This document shows positions 8,232 through 31,601 of a DNA stretch of 64,000 nucleotides, piece by piece; position 1 is the stretch's first letter; every line of letters starts with the position of its first letter. The stretch is taken from the sequence record MG592671.1; one strand, given 5' to 3'. The translations under genes were made by a program, and so were the position numbers. The notes beneath the pieces are model-generated. The model did no database searches. It was not told the origin of the DNA and saw nothing but the letters and a program-made list of their open reading frames with translations.

Positions 8232-8490
8232 AGACTTTGCTAGATCTATCCAACGTTGGACTGATTGCGAAATTGCAGCATACCAACTAGGCATCCATAT
8301 GGGTGCCTTTGATCAAGAAGATGTGCCGTTAAATGACTTTTACGAAGGTGATTTTGATGATGAGTATCTTCATGATCTAAAAATATCACTACTTAGAGCT
8401 CTTAACGCATTAGAGCACGAACGCTATATCGTATATTACATTGGAGAAAGCATGTGGAAATGGCGAAGCGATTTATATCCGTTGGACTAA
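8224..8490 (+). CDS. hypothetical protein (paralogue of previous gene)
   Basis: TTG start chosen by alignment with the upstream paralogue. Confidence 0.6.
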   Translation: MLEDFARSIQRWTDCEIAAYQLGIHMGAFDQEDVPLNDFYEGDFDDEYLHDLKISLLRALNALEHERYIVYYIGESMWKWRSDLYPLD

Positions 8491-8708
8491 TAGCTCTAGC
8501 ATTGGTCGGGTGTGGTAAAACTGAAATAGCTGAAGAAAAGTTTACTAAAGTTGAACTTGAATCAAATGATATGGTATTCACTGAGTTCTCACGATCTATG
8601 TCAGTGCTGCAGATAACTGCAAATGGAATGCCGTGTATAGTTTATAACCACATGTCAAACAAGGCAGGCATCACTTGTGATTGGACGAAATATAACCCCG
8701 GCCCATAG
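8460..8708 (+). CDS. Lipoprotein
   Basis: Signal peptide with lipobox LVGC. Confidence 0.65.
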   Translation: MAKRFISVGLIALALVGCGKTEIAEEKFTKVELESNDMVFTEFSRSMSVLQITANGMPCIVYNHMSNKAGITCDWTKYNPGP

Positions 8709-27464: not shown

Positions 27465-28322
27465 ATGGCTAAATCTGTAGCTGGGGTTAACAAATACCCC
27501 TTCGGAACAACCGGAATACGTATAGCCGCAGCATCAATGACGTCTGACTCTGGAACAGTCGTGTCAATAACTGGCGAGAAATGTATACTTAAACAAGCAT
27601 CATCATCGCAGTATAAAATTATTGCTGATAGCGCTGGAACATATACTATAGATACAGTTACGTTCACAGCAACCACAACAGCCCCTGATGCGGGTGGCGG
27701 AACTATTGCATTTAACATAGACAATATTTCGTTTACAGTGGCATATGATGAAGACACTACTAGTGATGAACTTGCGACAGAGGCTGCAAGAGTTGCCAAT
27801 CTAGCTGGAATAGCAGCAGTAGCATCTAATGACGTCTGTACGTTCACTCATACTGTAATTGGCCCTCAGCCACAAATTACATACACCATTAACGACAATG
27901 ATGATCTTGCTCCGCCAGTTCTCGATGTCACATCAGTTCCTGGCCTTGCTGAAGTGTTCACAGAAGTTGTGCGCCCTAAAAGTATAGGCAAGCAAGAATT
28001 ACTTTTTGATATTATGTCTTATGGTATAGCTCCTGCAGACACAGACAGTGAAGTCGCAACAAAACTATTTGAAACTCCAGGATCTTTTGCTATACGAGTG
28101 TGGAAGCGTGATATTAACGGTGATCCTGTCCAAGCTGGATACATATATGAATTAGGCCAAAAAATAGTATCTATTGCTGTTCCTAGCACTGGTATTGAAA
28201 CAGATCTAACAGATACATATGTTACTGGCTCGTATGAGTTAGTTAGTATGTCTGCTGGTGTTCCAGTAATCCCTGCGGGATCTAAATCTAAGTATTTCAT
28301 AGAAAGTCGTTTAGCCAGCTAA
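27465..28322 (+). CDS. Probable virion structural protein
   Basis: Thr/Ala/Val-rich beta composition; ATAAATA at 27425; SD AAGGAG. Confidence 0.55.
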   Translation: MAKSVAGVNKYPFGTTGIRIAAASMTSDSGTVVSITGEKCILKQASSSQYKIIADSAGTYTIDTVTFTATTTAPDAGGGTIAFNIDNISFTVAYDEDTTSDELATEAARVANLAGIAAVASNDVCTFTHTVIGPQPQITYTINDNDDLAPPVLDVTSVPGLAEVFTEVVRPKSIGKQELLFDIMSYGIAPADTDSEVATKLFETPGSFAIRVWKRDINGDPVQAGYIYELGQKIVSIAVPSTGIETDLTDTYVTGSYELVSMSAGVPVIPAGSKSKYFIESRLAS

Positions 28323-28341: not shown

Positions 28342-28376
28342 AAAAAAAGAGCTACTTTAAAGTAGCTCTTTTTTTT
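28342..28376. terminator. Bidirectional terminator between convergent genes
   Basis: A7-GAGCTACTTT/AAAGTAGCTC-T8. Confidence 0.9.
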
Positions 28377-28377
28377 G

Positions 28378-29136
28378 TTATCTAATAACAAAATCCGCAT
28401 ATTGGACAACTAGTCCTTCAGTGTTATCCCCTGATACCCTAACATCAATAACATCGCCAGTGCTTAATGACGTTACTGCAAACAATGATTCTGAATTAAC
28501 ATTATTCACTCCACGAGTTGAGAAAATAGTAGGAATCGTGATAGGCGATCCATTCTTAAACACATTAATTCGGTATTCATCAGTGCCACCAGCGCCAGAA
28601 GTACAAACTATTTTTGCATCGATGTATACTGGCGTGCCACTAGCATCAGGACCGGTGTATGTGAGAGATCCGTCAACGCTATTTTGATCAAAATTTCTTA
28701 TAAATGTTGTTGAGAACCCAGTACTAGCACCAGTAACTATTTTTGTATATTCGCTAACATCGCCTGTTGTTGGTGTTAGTGTTGTGTTTTGATCTTCAAC
28801 CCATGCATGTGCGTAGCATACTCGGTGCTCTATGTATGCCCATGCTCCTTGAGATCCGTCAGTAGTATACATGTGGAGCTCATCCGTATCAGTATTAAAT
28901 ACAACTAGACCATCAGATGCTTCAGTTAGGGCATCGCGTTCTAACGTAGTTACGTTAGGGATCACAACACCTCCTGATATGTCTCCTGATTCCCCTAAAA
29001 TAGTTTGCACGCCATCAACAACATTAACCACGCTACCGTTTGGAAAAATATAAAGACCATTCTCTAAATTACTATCATCCAGTCTTTTATTTTTTTCTGC
29101 CACTAATTTTTTGTATAATGATCGATTATTACTCAT
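28378..29136 (-). CDS. Probable fibre/structural protein with a C-terminal beta-sandwich
   Basis: SD AAAGGAG before ATG29136; IPNVTTLERDAL...GLVVFNTD motif; C-terminal LSTGDVIDVRV. Confidence 0.55.
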   Translation of the reverse strand: MSNNRSLYKKLVAEKNKRLDDSNLENGLYIFPNGSVVNVVDGVQTILGESGDISGGVVIPNVTTLERDALTEASDGLVVFNTDTDELHMYTTDGSQGAWAYIEHRVCYAHAWVEDQNTTLTPTTGDVSEYTKIVTGASTGFSTTFIRNFDQNSVDGSLTYTGPDASGTPVYIDAKIVCTSGAGGTDEYRINVFKNGSPITIPTIFSTRGVNNVNSESLFAVTSLSTGDVIDVRVSGDNTEGLVVQYADFVIR

Positions 29137-29191
29137 ATTATCTCCTTTGTGTGCGTATTGCACCAAAGCAAGTACGACTTATAATATCAAC

Positions 29192-29203
29192 TATTTATAA
29201 ATA
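29192..29203. promoter_or_regulatory. Palindromic bidirectional late promoter
   Basis: TATTTATAAATA is its own reverse complement and gives TATAAATA on both strands. Confidence 0.7.
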
Positions 29204-29235
29204 CGATTAATAGAGTTTTATTTAGGGTTTAAACC

Positions 29236-29619
29236 ATGGAAAATGAAAGAGAATCAAAGTTTAGTGAGTGGGCTAAACTGCTAGTGCCGGTTCTACTTCC
29301 AATGCTTATCATGGGATGTATATATCTGTCTAATGTTGTGATGTCACAAGGTACGCAAATTACCAAGTTAAAAACACATATGGATACACGCGCTATTTTG
29401 ATTACAAAATATGAAGCGACGTTTGATCAAATAGGAACAGATTTACAGCGCATTGATTTAAACATTTCGAAGCTAGAGTCTCGAATCACTGTAACTGAGC
29501 AATCACAAGGGAAGATCGTTAGTATTTTAGATGATCTTAACAAAACACTGGAACGTATAAATGTTACAGTTGGTAAGTTAGAAACACGCTTGGATTACAC
29601 AGAAAAATCTGGAGGGTAA
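29236..29619 (+). CDS. Holin-like TM plus coiled-coil protein
   Basis: Single N-terminal TM, long coiled coil, late promoter. Confidence 0.45.
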   Translation: MENERESKFSEWAKLLVPVLLPMLIMGCIYLSNVVMSQGTQITKLKTHMDTRAILITKYEATFDQIGTDLQRIDLNISKLESRITVTEQSQGKIVSILDDLNKTLERINVTVGKLETRLDYTEKSGG

Positions 29620-29620
29620 T

Positions 29621-29878
29621 ATGAAACCAATTACTCTTTTGATTATTACTTTCTTGCTGGCAACGTTGCCAGCAAGAAGTATAGCCCAAGACTTGCAATC
29701 ACACAAAAATGATGTTAGTGATAGGGTCGAGACTATCGAAGAAAAAATAGCTAAGTTGGAAAAAACACATATAGAACTTAAAGAAACTATATCTAGACTA
29801 GAAAAAAAAGTTGATGATACTAATCGTAGATTGACTATTTTAACTGGCACTTATTACGGAGCATCAGGGGGAAACTAA
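29621..29878 (+). CDS. Exported coiled-coil protein
   Basis: Signal peptide then heptad repeats. Confidence 0.55.
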   Translation: MKPITLLIITFLLATLPARSIAQDLQSHKNDVSDRVETIEEKIAKLEKTHIELKETISRLEKKVDDTNRRLTILTGTYYGASGGN

Positions 29879-30834
29879 TGAGGTACATTTTAAGTTTACT
29901 CGCTGGTGTGACTTTTTTATCGCATTCTGCAGAGGTATATCGCACTGAAAATTCTGTTGTGAATGCGAACGCGTATATTGAATATTCAGTTATGACCGGA
30001 CACGATCCAACAGAAAGCCCTTACATATCTGATAGTAAAGACCGAGATATATTAGGAGTGTCTGGGGTATATGTTTATGATATTAATACTGCATTCCTAG
30101 GCTCAGTGATGCGAGATACCACTAAAGATAAATGGGAACATCACTTTGCTGGCGTTAACATATCAGATACAAATACGAGCTGGACTGTTCTATACGGAAA
30201 ACAACCGTCAATATACGATGTTCAGGCAGGAAAAGGTGATTATAGCTACAAATTAGGTGGTGTGACTGTAGGTGGTGAACTAGGTGGCGGTATAACAGAC
30301 AACACCATACGCTCAACACTAGTCGAAAATCGTCTTGCTTTTGGGGTTTCGCATAGTTTTGGATACAAATCTATTGATAACATCACAGCTTTTGCGGCAA
30401 GATACGCGTTTGATGATGTTACAGTGAGTATTGGGTATCTATCAGGGCTAAGCTTTACTAAAAAAGGCTATGATAACATAGACATTGACAGAAAATATAA
30501 ATTATCATCTACTGCATACCAAACCGGGATAGCTTATACTAAAGACAAGTTGTCATTAGGTGCGTCAATTGAAAAGGCTAATATTGGGAGATGGAATGTT
30601 CTATCTTACGAGGTTGGTGTGCGATATTTTGTATCAGATAAAATGTCGTTTGCTTCCACATATGGAAACAGAGATGCCACATTCAAGAAAACACAGTCTG
30701 ATATTTCCACAAATCAAATAACATTTGGCACTGGATATAAAGTACACCCTAATGCTGAACTGTATGCTGAAGTTAGACAAGATTTTTATGGAAGATACAG
30801 TGCTAGTGCTATAGGAACTAAAATATATTTTTAA
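29878..30834 (+). CDS. Outer-membrane porin (OmpU/OmpC-like)
   Basis: Signal peptide, mature N-terminus AEVY, YGKQ, amphipathic strands, terminal KIYF. Confidence 0.8.
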   Translation: MRYILSLLAGVTFLSHSAEVYRTENSVVNANAYIEYSVMTGHDPTESPYISDSKDRDILGVSGVYVYDINTAFLGSVMRDTTKDKWEHHFAGVNISDTNTSWTVLYGKQPSIYDVQAGKGDYSYKLGGVTVGGELGGGITDNTIRSTLVENRLAFGVSHSFGYKSIDNITAFAARYAFDDVTVSIGYLSGLSFTKKGYDNIDIDRKYKLSSTAYQTGIAYTKDKLSLGASIEKANIGRWNVLSYEVGVRYFVSDKMSFASTYGNRDATFKKTQSDISTNQITFGTGYKVHPNAELYAEVRQDFYGRYSASAIGTKIYF

Positions 30835-30839
30835 CGTTC

Positions 30840-30863
30840 AAAACCCGTTACACGGGTTTTTTT
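30840..30863 (+). terminator. Rho-independent terminator
   Basis: AAAACCCGT-TAC-ACGGGTTTTTTT. Confidence 0.9.
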
Positions 30864-30944
30864 GTGACTATACGAATAGGTTATTGTTTTTTGCGTCAAT
30901 AAAAAATGTTATAACAAAATATATTATTTTACTTAGACTATAAA

Positions 30945-31601
30945 ATGAACATATTAAAAAATATCATTGTTAAGATGTTAATAGTAACAGGTTTATGCAC
31001 TGTGGGCCTAATGTCTATAGTAGGGTATGCAGTTTTTAAGGATTATATTGACACCACTCAATATGACATATCTGAGGCTATGGGAGCATCAAACGTTTAC
31101 GTTGATGGGAATGTCATAGTGATTGATGGCATTCTAGATGAATTTACCCTACCGCAAGTAAAGAATGTATTTTACGATAATATTAAGACTAATAATATCA
31201 ATACATTGTCTATAAAAAGTAATGGCGGCTCTGTTAACGCTGGATTAGAAATCGCAGATTTCGTTCATCAACACCAACTCAACACATTTGCTCCAAAAGA
31301 TTGCCACTCTGCATGTACGTTGGTGTTCACCGCTGGGATAAAAAAGACTATAACATTTGATACTGTTATGGGATTTCATGCACCAGGATGGCAGTTTAAA
31401 GAGAAATCATATTCAAAAGATACAGTAGGTGAGTTTGTCGCTACTGTTAACGATTATGCTGGTAAAATGATGAAACATTATATTGATAGTGGCATGTCGA
31501 CATCATTTGTTGCATCAATGTTCTCAACACCTTTTGAGGAAATTGAGTATTATAATGCAACTGAATTACTGAAAAACAAGGTTGCAAATTCTATACAGTG
31601 A
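30945..31601 (+). CDS. Membrane-anchored ClpP/crotonase-fold peptidase-like protein
   Basis: N-terminal TM, SNGGSV, CHSAC, GFHAP. Confidence 0.7.
   Translation: MNILKNIIVKMLIVTGLCTVGLMSIVGYAVFKDYIDTTQYDISEAMGASNVYVDGNVIVIDGILDEFTLPQVKNVFYDNIKTNNINTLSIKSNGGSVNAGLEIADFVHQHQLNTFAPKDCHSACTLVFTAGIKKTITFDTVMGFHAPGWQFKEKSYSKDTVGEFVATVNDYAGKMMKHYIDSGMSTSFVASMFSTPFEEIEYYNATELLKNKVANSIQ

Follow-up and report, generated by a model that had tools for sequence, protein, structure and literature searches.

Vibrio phage 2.275.O._10N.286.54.E11 (MG592671.1; 348,911 bp; hereafter 2.275.O), which was obtained by plaque assay with Vibrio cyclitrophicus as the host of isolation, encodes a protein with the predicted fold of a bacterial general porin. 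This protein, gp271, is a genuine, transcribed and phage-specific predicted outer-membrane protein, and its gene is the last of a three-gene operon. The operon lies in a stretch of 64,000 nucleotides (the window, whose base 1 is base 124001 of the record) and consists of gp269, gp270 and gp271, three open reading frames (ORFs) on the plus strand that occupy positions 29236–30834 and are annotated in the record only as "coil containing protein" (twice) and "hypothetical protein." No paper on the gp271 gene was found in the literature. What is new here is a porin-fold family, by all appearances confined to phages, that is embedded in a late operon linked to lysis. The reading that we favor, tentatively and as one that is quite possible if somewhat short of probable, is that gp271 serves as the outer-membrane accessory of a non-canonical, lipoprotein-free module for lysis or for bridging the envelope.

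A Porin Fold Hidden from Sequence Searches

The ends of gp271 are those expected of an exported barrel: an N-terminal hydrophobic, signal-like segment is followed by a cleavage region (...SHS/A) and the mature start AEVY, which we take to resemble the start of OmpC and OmpF, and the protein terminates in ...KIYF. Signal peptides and topology, here and below, were assigned by eye and by a hydropathy scan. The AlphaFold2 model of gp271, calculated from an alignment of four sequences (predicted local distance difference test, pLDDT, 75; predicted template-modeling score 0.73), has 16 strands, the N-terminal strand completing the last one, and its strands 5 and 6 are joined by a 28-residue L3-like loop with two short helices (residues 111–138). 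In a Foldseek search with this model the top PDB matches were all porins (E-values 1e-13 to 1e-14), the best being OmpT and OmpU of V. cholerae, Omp38 of Burkholderia, OmpF and OmpK36. Structural alignment by VIA-align yielded Z-scores of 21.6–23.1 (OmpT 23.1, OmpU 22.8, OmpC 22.6, OmpF and PhoE approximately 22) over 266–288 residues, with root-mean-square deviations of 3.4–4.0 Å and sequence identities of 12–18%. A separate model from the ESM Atlas gave template-modeling scores of 0.83–0.85 to porin clusters. In the models, gp271 thus has unambiguously the 16-strand fold of the general porins. An earlier note on this DNA had proposed a full-length porin with a signal peptide and a terminal Phe, and had made this depend on the predicted structure being a β-barrel; the 16-strand model, the top PDB matches, which are porins only, and the C-terminal ...KIYF bear the proposal out.

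Sequence comparison gave a different picture. In Pfam the sole match of gp271 was OMP_b-brl with 17.6 bits, under the cut-off of 28.7 bits, and every porin family stayed below its cut-off. Searches of PHROG and NCBIfam returned no match, and neither gp271 alone nor the profile of its family matched any PDB sequence in a HMMER search, though OmpC, OmpF, OmpU and OmpT were included. By sequence, gp271 is thus in no curated porin family.

Like the general porins (OmpF, OmpC and PhoE; OmpU and OmpT in V. cholerae), gp271 has a signal peptide, an aromatic C-terminus and, in the model, a barrel of 16 antiparallel strands whose strands 5 and 6 are connected by a long loop that contains short helices. 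Unlike them, it is encoded by a phage in a late operon, is approximately 40 residues shorter than OmpF and has very short loops. According to the model, the surface loops are short save L1, L3 and L5, and L2 comprises only about four residues. In classical porins L2 is the loop that latches the trimer, and its brevity in the gp271 model hints at a weaker trimer or none. At approximately 300 residues and nearly devoid of surface loops, such a minimal porin may be of interest for outer-membrane biogenesis and protein engineering.

The most conserved part of the family is the L3-like segment, with 12 of the 31 invariant columns falling within residues 107–142. That this L3-like, putative constriction loop is best conserved, and that the fold is the one of general diffusion porins, would suit a plain diffusion porin, general or solute-selective, which keeps up or boosts uptake or replaces host porins during host shut-off and happens to be cotranscribed with two envelope proteins to which it is unrelated. 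BFVD contains further phage proteins with a porin annotation, which points the same way. We nevertheless consider this explanation unlikely, one argument against it being that gp271 has no sequence kinship with any host porin; others follow from its promoter and its gene neighborhood (see below).

A Family without Detectable Cellular Kin

A full HMMER pass through 1.84 billion representative proteins recovered three relatives of gp271 (E-values 7e-28 to 7e-9) and no cellular homolog. A fourth, divergent barrel was reached via a neighboring gene on contig L029 (hhalign probability 98.5%); its L3-like loop is shorter. All of these relatives sit on phage-like contigs. The C-terminus of one relative (P0004) reads ...YEF, and those of two others (P0002 and P0003) are hydrophobic and non-aromatic. 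Word searches with the single gp271 sequence and with the profile found no further barrel relatives, scans of IMG/VR and of JGI metagenomes added none, and a tblastn search with gp271 against 50,697 phage records matched 2.275.O alone. The porin-fold family of gp271 appears to be phage-restricted, and annotation by sequence misses it; for this reason the number of virus-encoded outer-membrane proteins may be underestimated.

Porins on phages have precedents. Lc of phage PA-2 and NmpC of DLP12 are, like gp271, products of phage-borne genes for an outer-membrane porin fold. Both are close homologs of the OmpC/OmpF family; they are carried by lambdoid phages that are temperate, and they function in lysogenic conversion or exclusion. 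In contrast, gp271 has no detectable kinship with host porins and belongs to a jumbo phage, in which its gene lies behind a late promoter and is coupled to those of two envelope coiled-coil proteins. Because no cellular homolog was found, gp271 is not a recent capture of a host porin of the Lc/NmpC kind.

These properties also bear on roles at the cell surface, such as superinfection exclusion, a decoy or mask on debris and vesicles, or an outer-membrane sensor that reports secondary adsorption via gp270 and gp269 to the lysis clock, as in T4 lysis inhibition. Porins are common vibriophage receptors, late expression would suit the protection of progeny, and the two proteins to which the barrel is coupled face the periplasm and occur alongside lysis genes. 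However, gp271 bears no sequence likeness to host porins, the minimal extracellular loops of the model (but for L1, L3 and L5) leave little surface for receptor mimicry, and no homology to known exclusion proteins was detected in Pfam, PHROG and NCBIfam, so that we give roles of this type little credence. Several functions had been suggested for the porin in the earlier note. Among them, disruption of the outer membrane gains support from the lysis-gene neighbors in relatives, whereas PnuC/phosphate uptake, a receptor decoy and poisoning of host porins by hetero-trimers gain none. No resemblance to host porins exists at the sequence level, and the surface loops of the model are very short, L2 with its four or so residues among them.

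Late Promoter and Transcription

The start codon of gp270 lies 1 nt beyond the stop codon of gp269, and gp270 and gp271 overlap in a TAATG stop/start junction; judging by this spacing, the three genes are translationally coupled. A T4-type late motif, TATAAATAC, is located 39 nt upstream of the gp269 ATG. The divergently oriented gp268 obtains the same motif from the palindrome TATTTATAAATA, and gp267 has one too (Table 1). When TATAAATA was counted within the window only, five sites were found vs. eight expected, and "late" looked unsupported for lack of enrichment. A count that covered the whole assembled phage and took orientation into account reversed this. Oriented upstream intergenic DNA, which makes up 3.5% of the sequence space scored, contains 41 of the 65 ATAAATA sites on both strands, compared to 2.3 expected. 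The spacing of xATAAATA(C) to the start codons is 14–95 nt, mostly 30–45 nt, and the genes preceded by such sites, most of them for tail and baseplate, include those for the head-completion adaptor, the tail sheath, pectin-lyase-fold tail-spike-like proteins, a protein of 3,771 residues and the baseplate-region protein gp429.

A second promoter class, of the extended −10 sigma-70 type (TGTTATAAT), occurs genome-wide, with 74 of 203 TGNTATAA sites in oriented upstream intergenic DNA vs. 7 expected; one example in the window is at 30914–30922. The promoter of gp272 past the hairpin that follows gp271 is of this early type (TGTTATAAC). Together, the two classes permit an early/late map of a poorly annotated phage of 349 kb. 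They also matter for the interpretation of gp271 as a plain diffusion porin. Genes of auxiliary metabolism, namely for nicotinamide mononucleotide (NMN) adenylyltransferase, nicotinate phosphoribosyltransferase and PhoH, are abundant in the region, which would fit a function in uptake; yet these adjacent genes carry early TGTTATAAT-type promoters, whereas the barrel is served by the late type that is common to virion genes.

Transcription is documented by contigs assembled from public RNA-seq libraries of two studies, which show presence and boundaries, not strand, exact ends or timing. In run X1 a contig of 1,597 nt (29252–30847) represents the three-gene unit, and its coverage is interrupted at the divergent promoter as well as at the terminator; transcription of the unit is predicted to start near 29210, and its 3' end to lie near 30860. 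In run X4 a contig of gp268–gp271 ends at 30813 and has a depth of 442, vs. 16–33 for the few contigs of gp272–274, contig depths being only indicative; one X4 contig bridges the divergent promoter region. The hairpin was read from the sequence and was not listed by a consensus terminator scan. The motif arrangement recurs in relatives: contig L028 has the same divergent pair, and on contig L032 a late motif precedes the gp269 homolog. From TATAAATAC, the 41/65 enrichment ahead of virion genes and the RNA contig edges at promoter and terminator we infer that gp269–271 form a late operon, in agreement with the earlier note, which had placed the porin in one.

Table 1. Features in and around the gp269–271 operon (positions in the window).
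Feature	Position	Strand	Description
gp268	28378–29166	−	262 amino acids (aa); divergent from the same late-motif palindrome
Late-motif palindrome TATTTATAAATA	29192–29203	both	TATAAATA at 29196–29203 (+) for gp269–271 and at 29199–29192 (−) for gp268
gp269	29236–29619	+	127 aa; predicted transmembrane helix, then long periplasmic helix
gp270	29621–29878	+	85 aa; predicted signal peptide and coiled coil
gp271	29878–30834	+	318 aa; signal peptide, 16-strand porin-fold barrel (model)
Terminator-like hairpin	30840–30863	+	AAAACCCGT / tac / ACGGGTTTT, then T run; 6 nt past the gp271 stop

Two Predicted Envelope Proteins Upstream of the Barrel

According to the hydropathy scan, gp269 has a short N-terminal tail and one transmembrane (TM) helix at residues 13–31, which may reach to about residue 37. 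The rest forms, in an ESM Atlas model (pLDDT 0.87), a single long helix of approximately 90 residues, which is predicted to be periplasmic and terminates in the motif GKLETRLDY, conserved in the alignment. With a profile built for the gp269 family, 15 members were recovered; among isolated phages the searches found gp269 in 2.275.O and no relative in any other. The protein weakly matches Rz-like spanin PHROGs (E-value 2.7e-3; 8.7e-5 and 3.1e-4 for the homolog on contig L009) and has no match among holin families. The designation of gp269 as holin-like in the earlier note thus stands in part: the predicted topology, with a short N-in tail, one TM segment and the C-terminus out, is compatible with a class III holin and fits an i-spanin equally, and family searches do not back a holin. 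A lipobox-like IMGC (residues 24–27) was considered as a sign that gp269 might be a lipoprotein and was rejected, as the helix extends beyond the cysteine, which is itself not conserved.

The second protein, gp270, carries a cleavable-looking signal peptide (...ARSIA/QD), followed by a coiled coil of approximately 45 residues, in keeping with its earlier description as an exported coiled-coil protein. Its matches in Pfam, PHROG and NCBIfam were sub-threshold and of the coiled-coil type only. Neither gp270 nor gp271 contains a cysteine, and gp270 is therefore not a lipoprotein.

With these features the three genes invite comparison with two-component spanins (Rz/Rz1 of lambda; PseT.3/PseT.2 of T4). 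Like these systems, they are tightly coupled and late, gp269 has the architecture of an i-spanin (an N-terminal TM segment and a periplasmic coiled coil), and the pair stands beside an endolysin gene in relatives. Unlike them, gp269–271 comprise three proteins with an integral β-barrel as the outer-membrane member, there are no periplasmic cysteines for disulfides, and gp270 and gp271 have neither cysteine nor lipobox, so that the defining o-spanin lipoprotein is missing. For want of this lipoprotein, the module is not to be filed as a spanin.

The other obvious model is the T4 pair of holin T and antiholin RI, to which 2.275.O is similar in having a single-TM protein with a periplasmic domain (gp269), a small secreted protein (gp270), T4-type late promoters and T4-like baseplate and tail genes. 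In this case gp269 would be a class III-like holin, gp270 a secreted antiholin-like regulator, and the barrel a passenger inserted before the terminator. That 2.275.O has no recognizable holin otherwise would be in line with such an assignment. However, Phage_holin_T is not matched, gp269 continues into the periplasm as a single long coiled-coil helix on the i-spanin pattern and not as a globular domain, and T4 has no outer-membrane barrel as a partner. We regard this explanation as rather improbable, and the gene order in relatives, discussed in the following section, contributes arguments on both sides.

Gene Neighborhoods in Relatives

Wherever the barrel gene occurs, it is the third gene behind homologs of gp269 and gp270. 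This holds for contigs of two distant phage lineages (L004/L028 on the one hand; L006–L008, L009 and L029 on the other), and every cassette has its own upstream gap and terminator. L004/L028 represent a relative of 2.275.O with a common DnaB-to-PRA-PH block; their cassette adjoins a gp031 homolog and is not found at 153 kb, which indicates that it is mobile. The remaining contigs belong to D69-like Vibrio phages (approximately 187 kb), where the cassette is located beside a ThiF/JAB gene pair. This pair, a ThiF-like E1 and a Prok-JAB deubiquitinase-like protein (L006:2899–4995; L029:9477–12101; also in L023, which is D69), is convergent with the cassette and looks like a phage ubiquitin-like conjugation module; a homolog in Salmonella phage Arash is annotated as a structural protein.

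The constant position behind the same coiled-coil pair in two lineages argues against a plain diffusion porin, and a passenger behind a holin/antiholin pair would leave the repeated arrangement unexplained. Conversely, the barrel is gained and lost independently of its two partners, as would be expected of a moron-type accessory gene, a point in favor of a diffusion porin, and the pair occurs without it on L032 and L031, which the holin/antiholin interpretation would accommodate. The order on L032 is gp265, gp266, gp267 (inverted), gp269, a gp270-like gene, gp272 and gp274; the late motif, the terminator and the early promoter are retained, and the barrel and gp268 are missing. The late gene gp268 accompanies the barrel in two relatives and is absent where the barrel is absent, which can be counted in favor of a surface-directed role. 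Its homolog on L028 (34% identity over 200 aa) has the same divergent position by the cassette; the model of gp268, from an alignment of two sequences, was too poor for a structure search (pLDDT 48).

On L031, which shares PRA-PH synteny with L004/L028, genes for a TM coiled-coil protein, a secreted coiled-coil protein, a lysozyme and a lipoprotein follow each other without a barrel. The lysozyme (207 aa; Phage_lysozyme, E-value 4e-12) has an N-terminal TM segment, and the lipoprotein is homologous (E-value 4e-18) to the product of the gene after the barrel in L004/L028. If gp269 and gp270 were holin and antiholin, this would be a complete canonical cassette of holin, regulator, membrane-tethered lysozyme and u-spanin-like lipoprotein. 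The lipoproteins (L004:1598–1981 and L031:2002–2430; 127–142 aa; lipoboxes LLGC and VSGC) have C-terminal hydrophobic segments and thereby the topology of a unimolecular spanin of the T1 gp11 type, with a weak match to a spanin PHROG (E-value 1.5e-4); no homolog of them exists in 2.275.O. The secreted protein of L031 (L031:928–1347) contains a long (DG)n repeat and then a His-rich tail (HSHNHSH...). This region resembles a metal-binding or low-complexity spacer and sits where other lineages have the barrel next.

In the D69-like lineage a multi-TM gene of phrog_2524 directly precedes the TM coiled-coil gene with an overlap of a few bases (L009, L029 and L035), and D69 itself has the pair of phrog_2524 and TM coiled-coil genes in the same slot, again without a barrel. 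That these contigs already possess a multi-TM membrane protein directly upstream speaks against gp269 being the holin. In Pseudomonas phage O4 a gene of phrog_2524 is two genes away from the annotated endolysin, and in Vibrio phage 1.179.O one is close to a gene for a peptidase M15A. A GTA-type holin was considered for this family and dismissed, since Pfam gave no support; its holin-like status refers to topology and to the nearby endolysin or peptidase in these two phages. One phrog_2524 homolog resembles T7 gp14 at a non-significant level (E-value 0.049), and a role as ejection protein is possible.

The 125-aa TM coiled-coil protein of D69 and the 139-aa secreted protein of L031 show only weak similarity to the families of gp269 and gp270 (hhalign probabilities of 14 and 3%, respectively) and were treated as positional analogs. 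Taken together, the gp269/gp270 pair is the constant unit, which behaves like a component of a lysis cassette, and the barrel is its optional third member.

Lysis Genes of 2.275.O and the Proposed Role of the Barrel

No protein of 2.275.O matched GTA_holin_3TM, Phage_holin_T (PF11031) or Phage_lysis/Rz. The sole Phage_lysozyme domain of the phage is in the baseplate-hub-like gp427. A lipobox scan of the whole phage yielded gp035 and gp221 only, neither of them beside a type II membrane protein, and no small ORF embedded in gp269–271 was seen. By the criteria of Kongari et al. (2018; PMC6139136), 2.275.O thus has no identifiable spanin. The best endolysin candidate is gp128 (L012:31112–31705; record 81112–81705), a SleB-like cell-wall hydrolase that carries a signal peptide and whose gene is preceded, at a distance of 46 nt, by a late-type motif. 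The gene lies 72 kb from gp269–271, with which it has only the late motif in common. As a separate observation, gp221 (8460–8708 in the window) is an 82-aa lipoprotein with the lipobox LVGC, whose gene overlaps two genes for small cytoplasmic-looking proteins; possible identities are an exclusion-type lipoprotein and an orphan o-spanin.

Because the partner genes adjoin lysis genes in relatives, the barrel may well help to breach or bridge the envelope late in infection. From topology, fold and gene context we infer the localization of the three proteins, their contacts with one another and their effect on lysis, and on this basis propose the following sequence of events. During late infection gp269, gp270 and gp271 would accumulate in the envelope, where the coiled coils of gp269 and gp270 would reach over the periplasm from the inner membrane. 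With approximately 13 nm for the gp269 helix (about 90 residues) and 6–7 nm for the coiled coil of gp270 (about 45 residues), they could span a periplasm of approximately 20 nm. The gp271 barrel would either form the outer-membrane end, where canonical spanins use a lipoprotein, or perforate the outer membrane, which would fail once the wall has been degraded. A more specific version seems doubtful to us: gp269–271 would constitute a lipoprotein-free, three-part envelope-spanning lysis device, with an inner-membrane coiled coil and a soluble coiled-coil adaptor in the periplasm attached to the integral barrel, which would take the place of the o-spanin, serve as an "outer-membrane holin" or be a sensor for the lysis clock.

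Several observations weigh against a lysis or envelope-bridging accessory. The strongest conservation of gp271 is in the L3-like pore loop, a pattern more in keeping with a functional channel than with a simple anchor. The spanin PHROG matches of gp269 are weak and could stem from coiled-coil composition, and phrog_2524 has no Pfam holin match. In 2.275.O the operon is not adjacent to an endolysin gene. The barrel is dispensable for the pair, as L031 and the close and syntenic L032 have the coiled-coil genes without it, and L004/L028 hold the barrel plus a lipoprotein of u-spanin-like topology, so that outer-membrane disruption is possibly redundant there. Moreover, no prediction links the three proteins: the complex of the periplasmic part of gp269 with mature gp270 and mature gp271, the barrel being treated as partner, scored 0.00 vs. 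a mark of 0.32, a result that counts neither way.

These genes bear on the question of how phages without spanins get through the outer membrane. Among phages of Gram-negative hosts, 91 had no identifiable spanin, several Vibrio phages among them (Kongari et al., 2018), and for phage phiKT a route to outer-membrane disruption by a cationic peptide has been reported (bioRxiv 10.1101/515445). If the more specific version with a three-part device is true, it would be a third route besides spanins and the phiKT peptide. For this question gp269–271 represent a concrete three-gene candidate, with natural relatives that have the barrel and others that lack it.

Neighboring Genes

Together with gp269–271, the genes gp267 (27465–28322, plus strand) and gp268, both of which have late motifs, make up a small late island set within an extended series of early-type accessory genes. 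The terminator that gp267 and gp268 have in common (28342–28375) is bidirectional, and the inverted gene on L032 mentioned above is the homolog of gp267. Downstream of the operon, gp272 (30945–31601) encodes a membrane-anchored protein with a ClpP/SppA-like serine-protease fold, which matches phrog_26024 (E-value 2e-12), its matches to Clp-related families being below the cut-off. The gene has its own early-type promoter just past the operon terminator and is kept beside the coiled-coil pair on L032.

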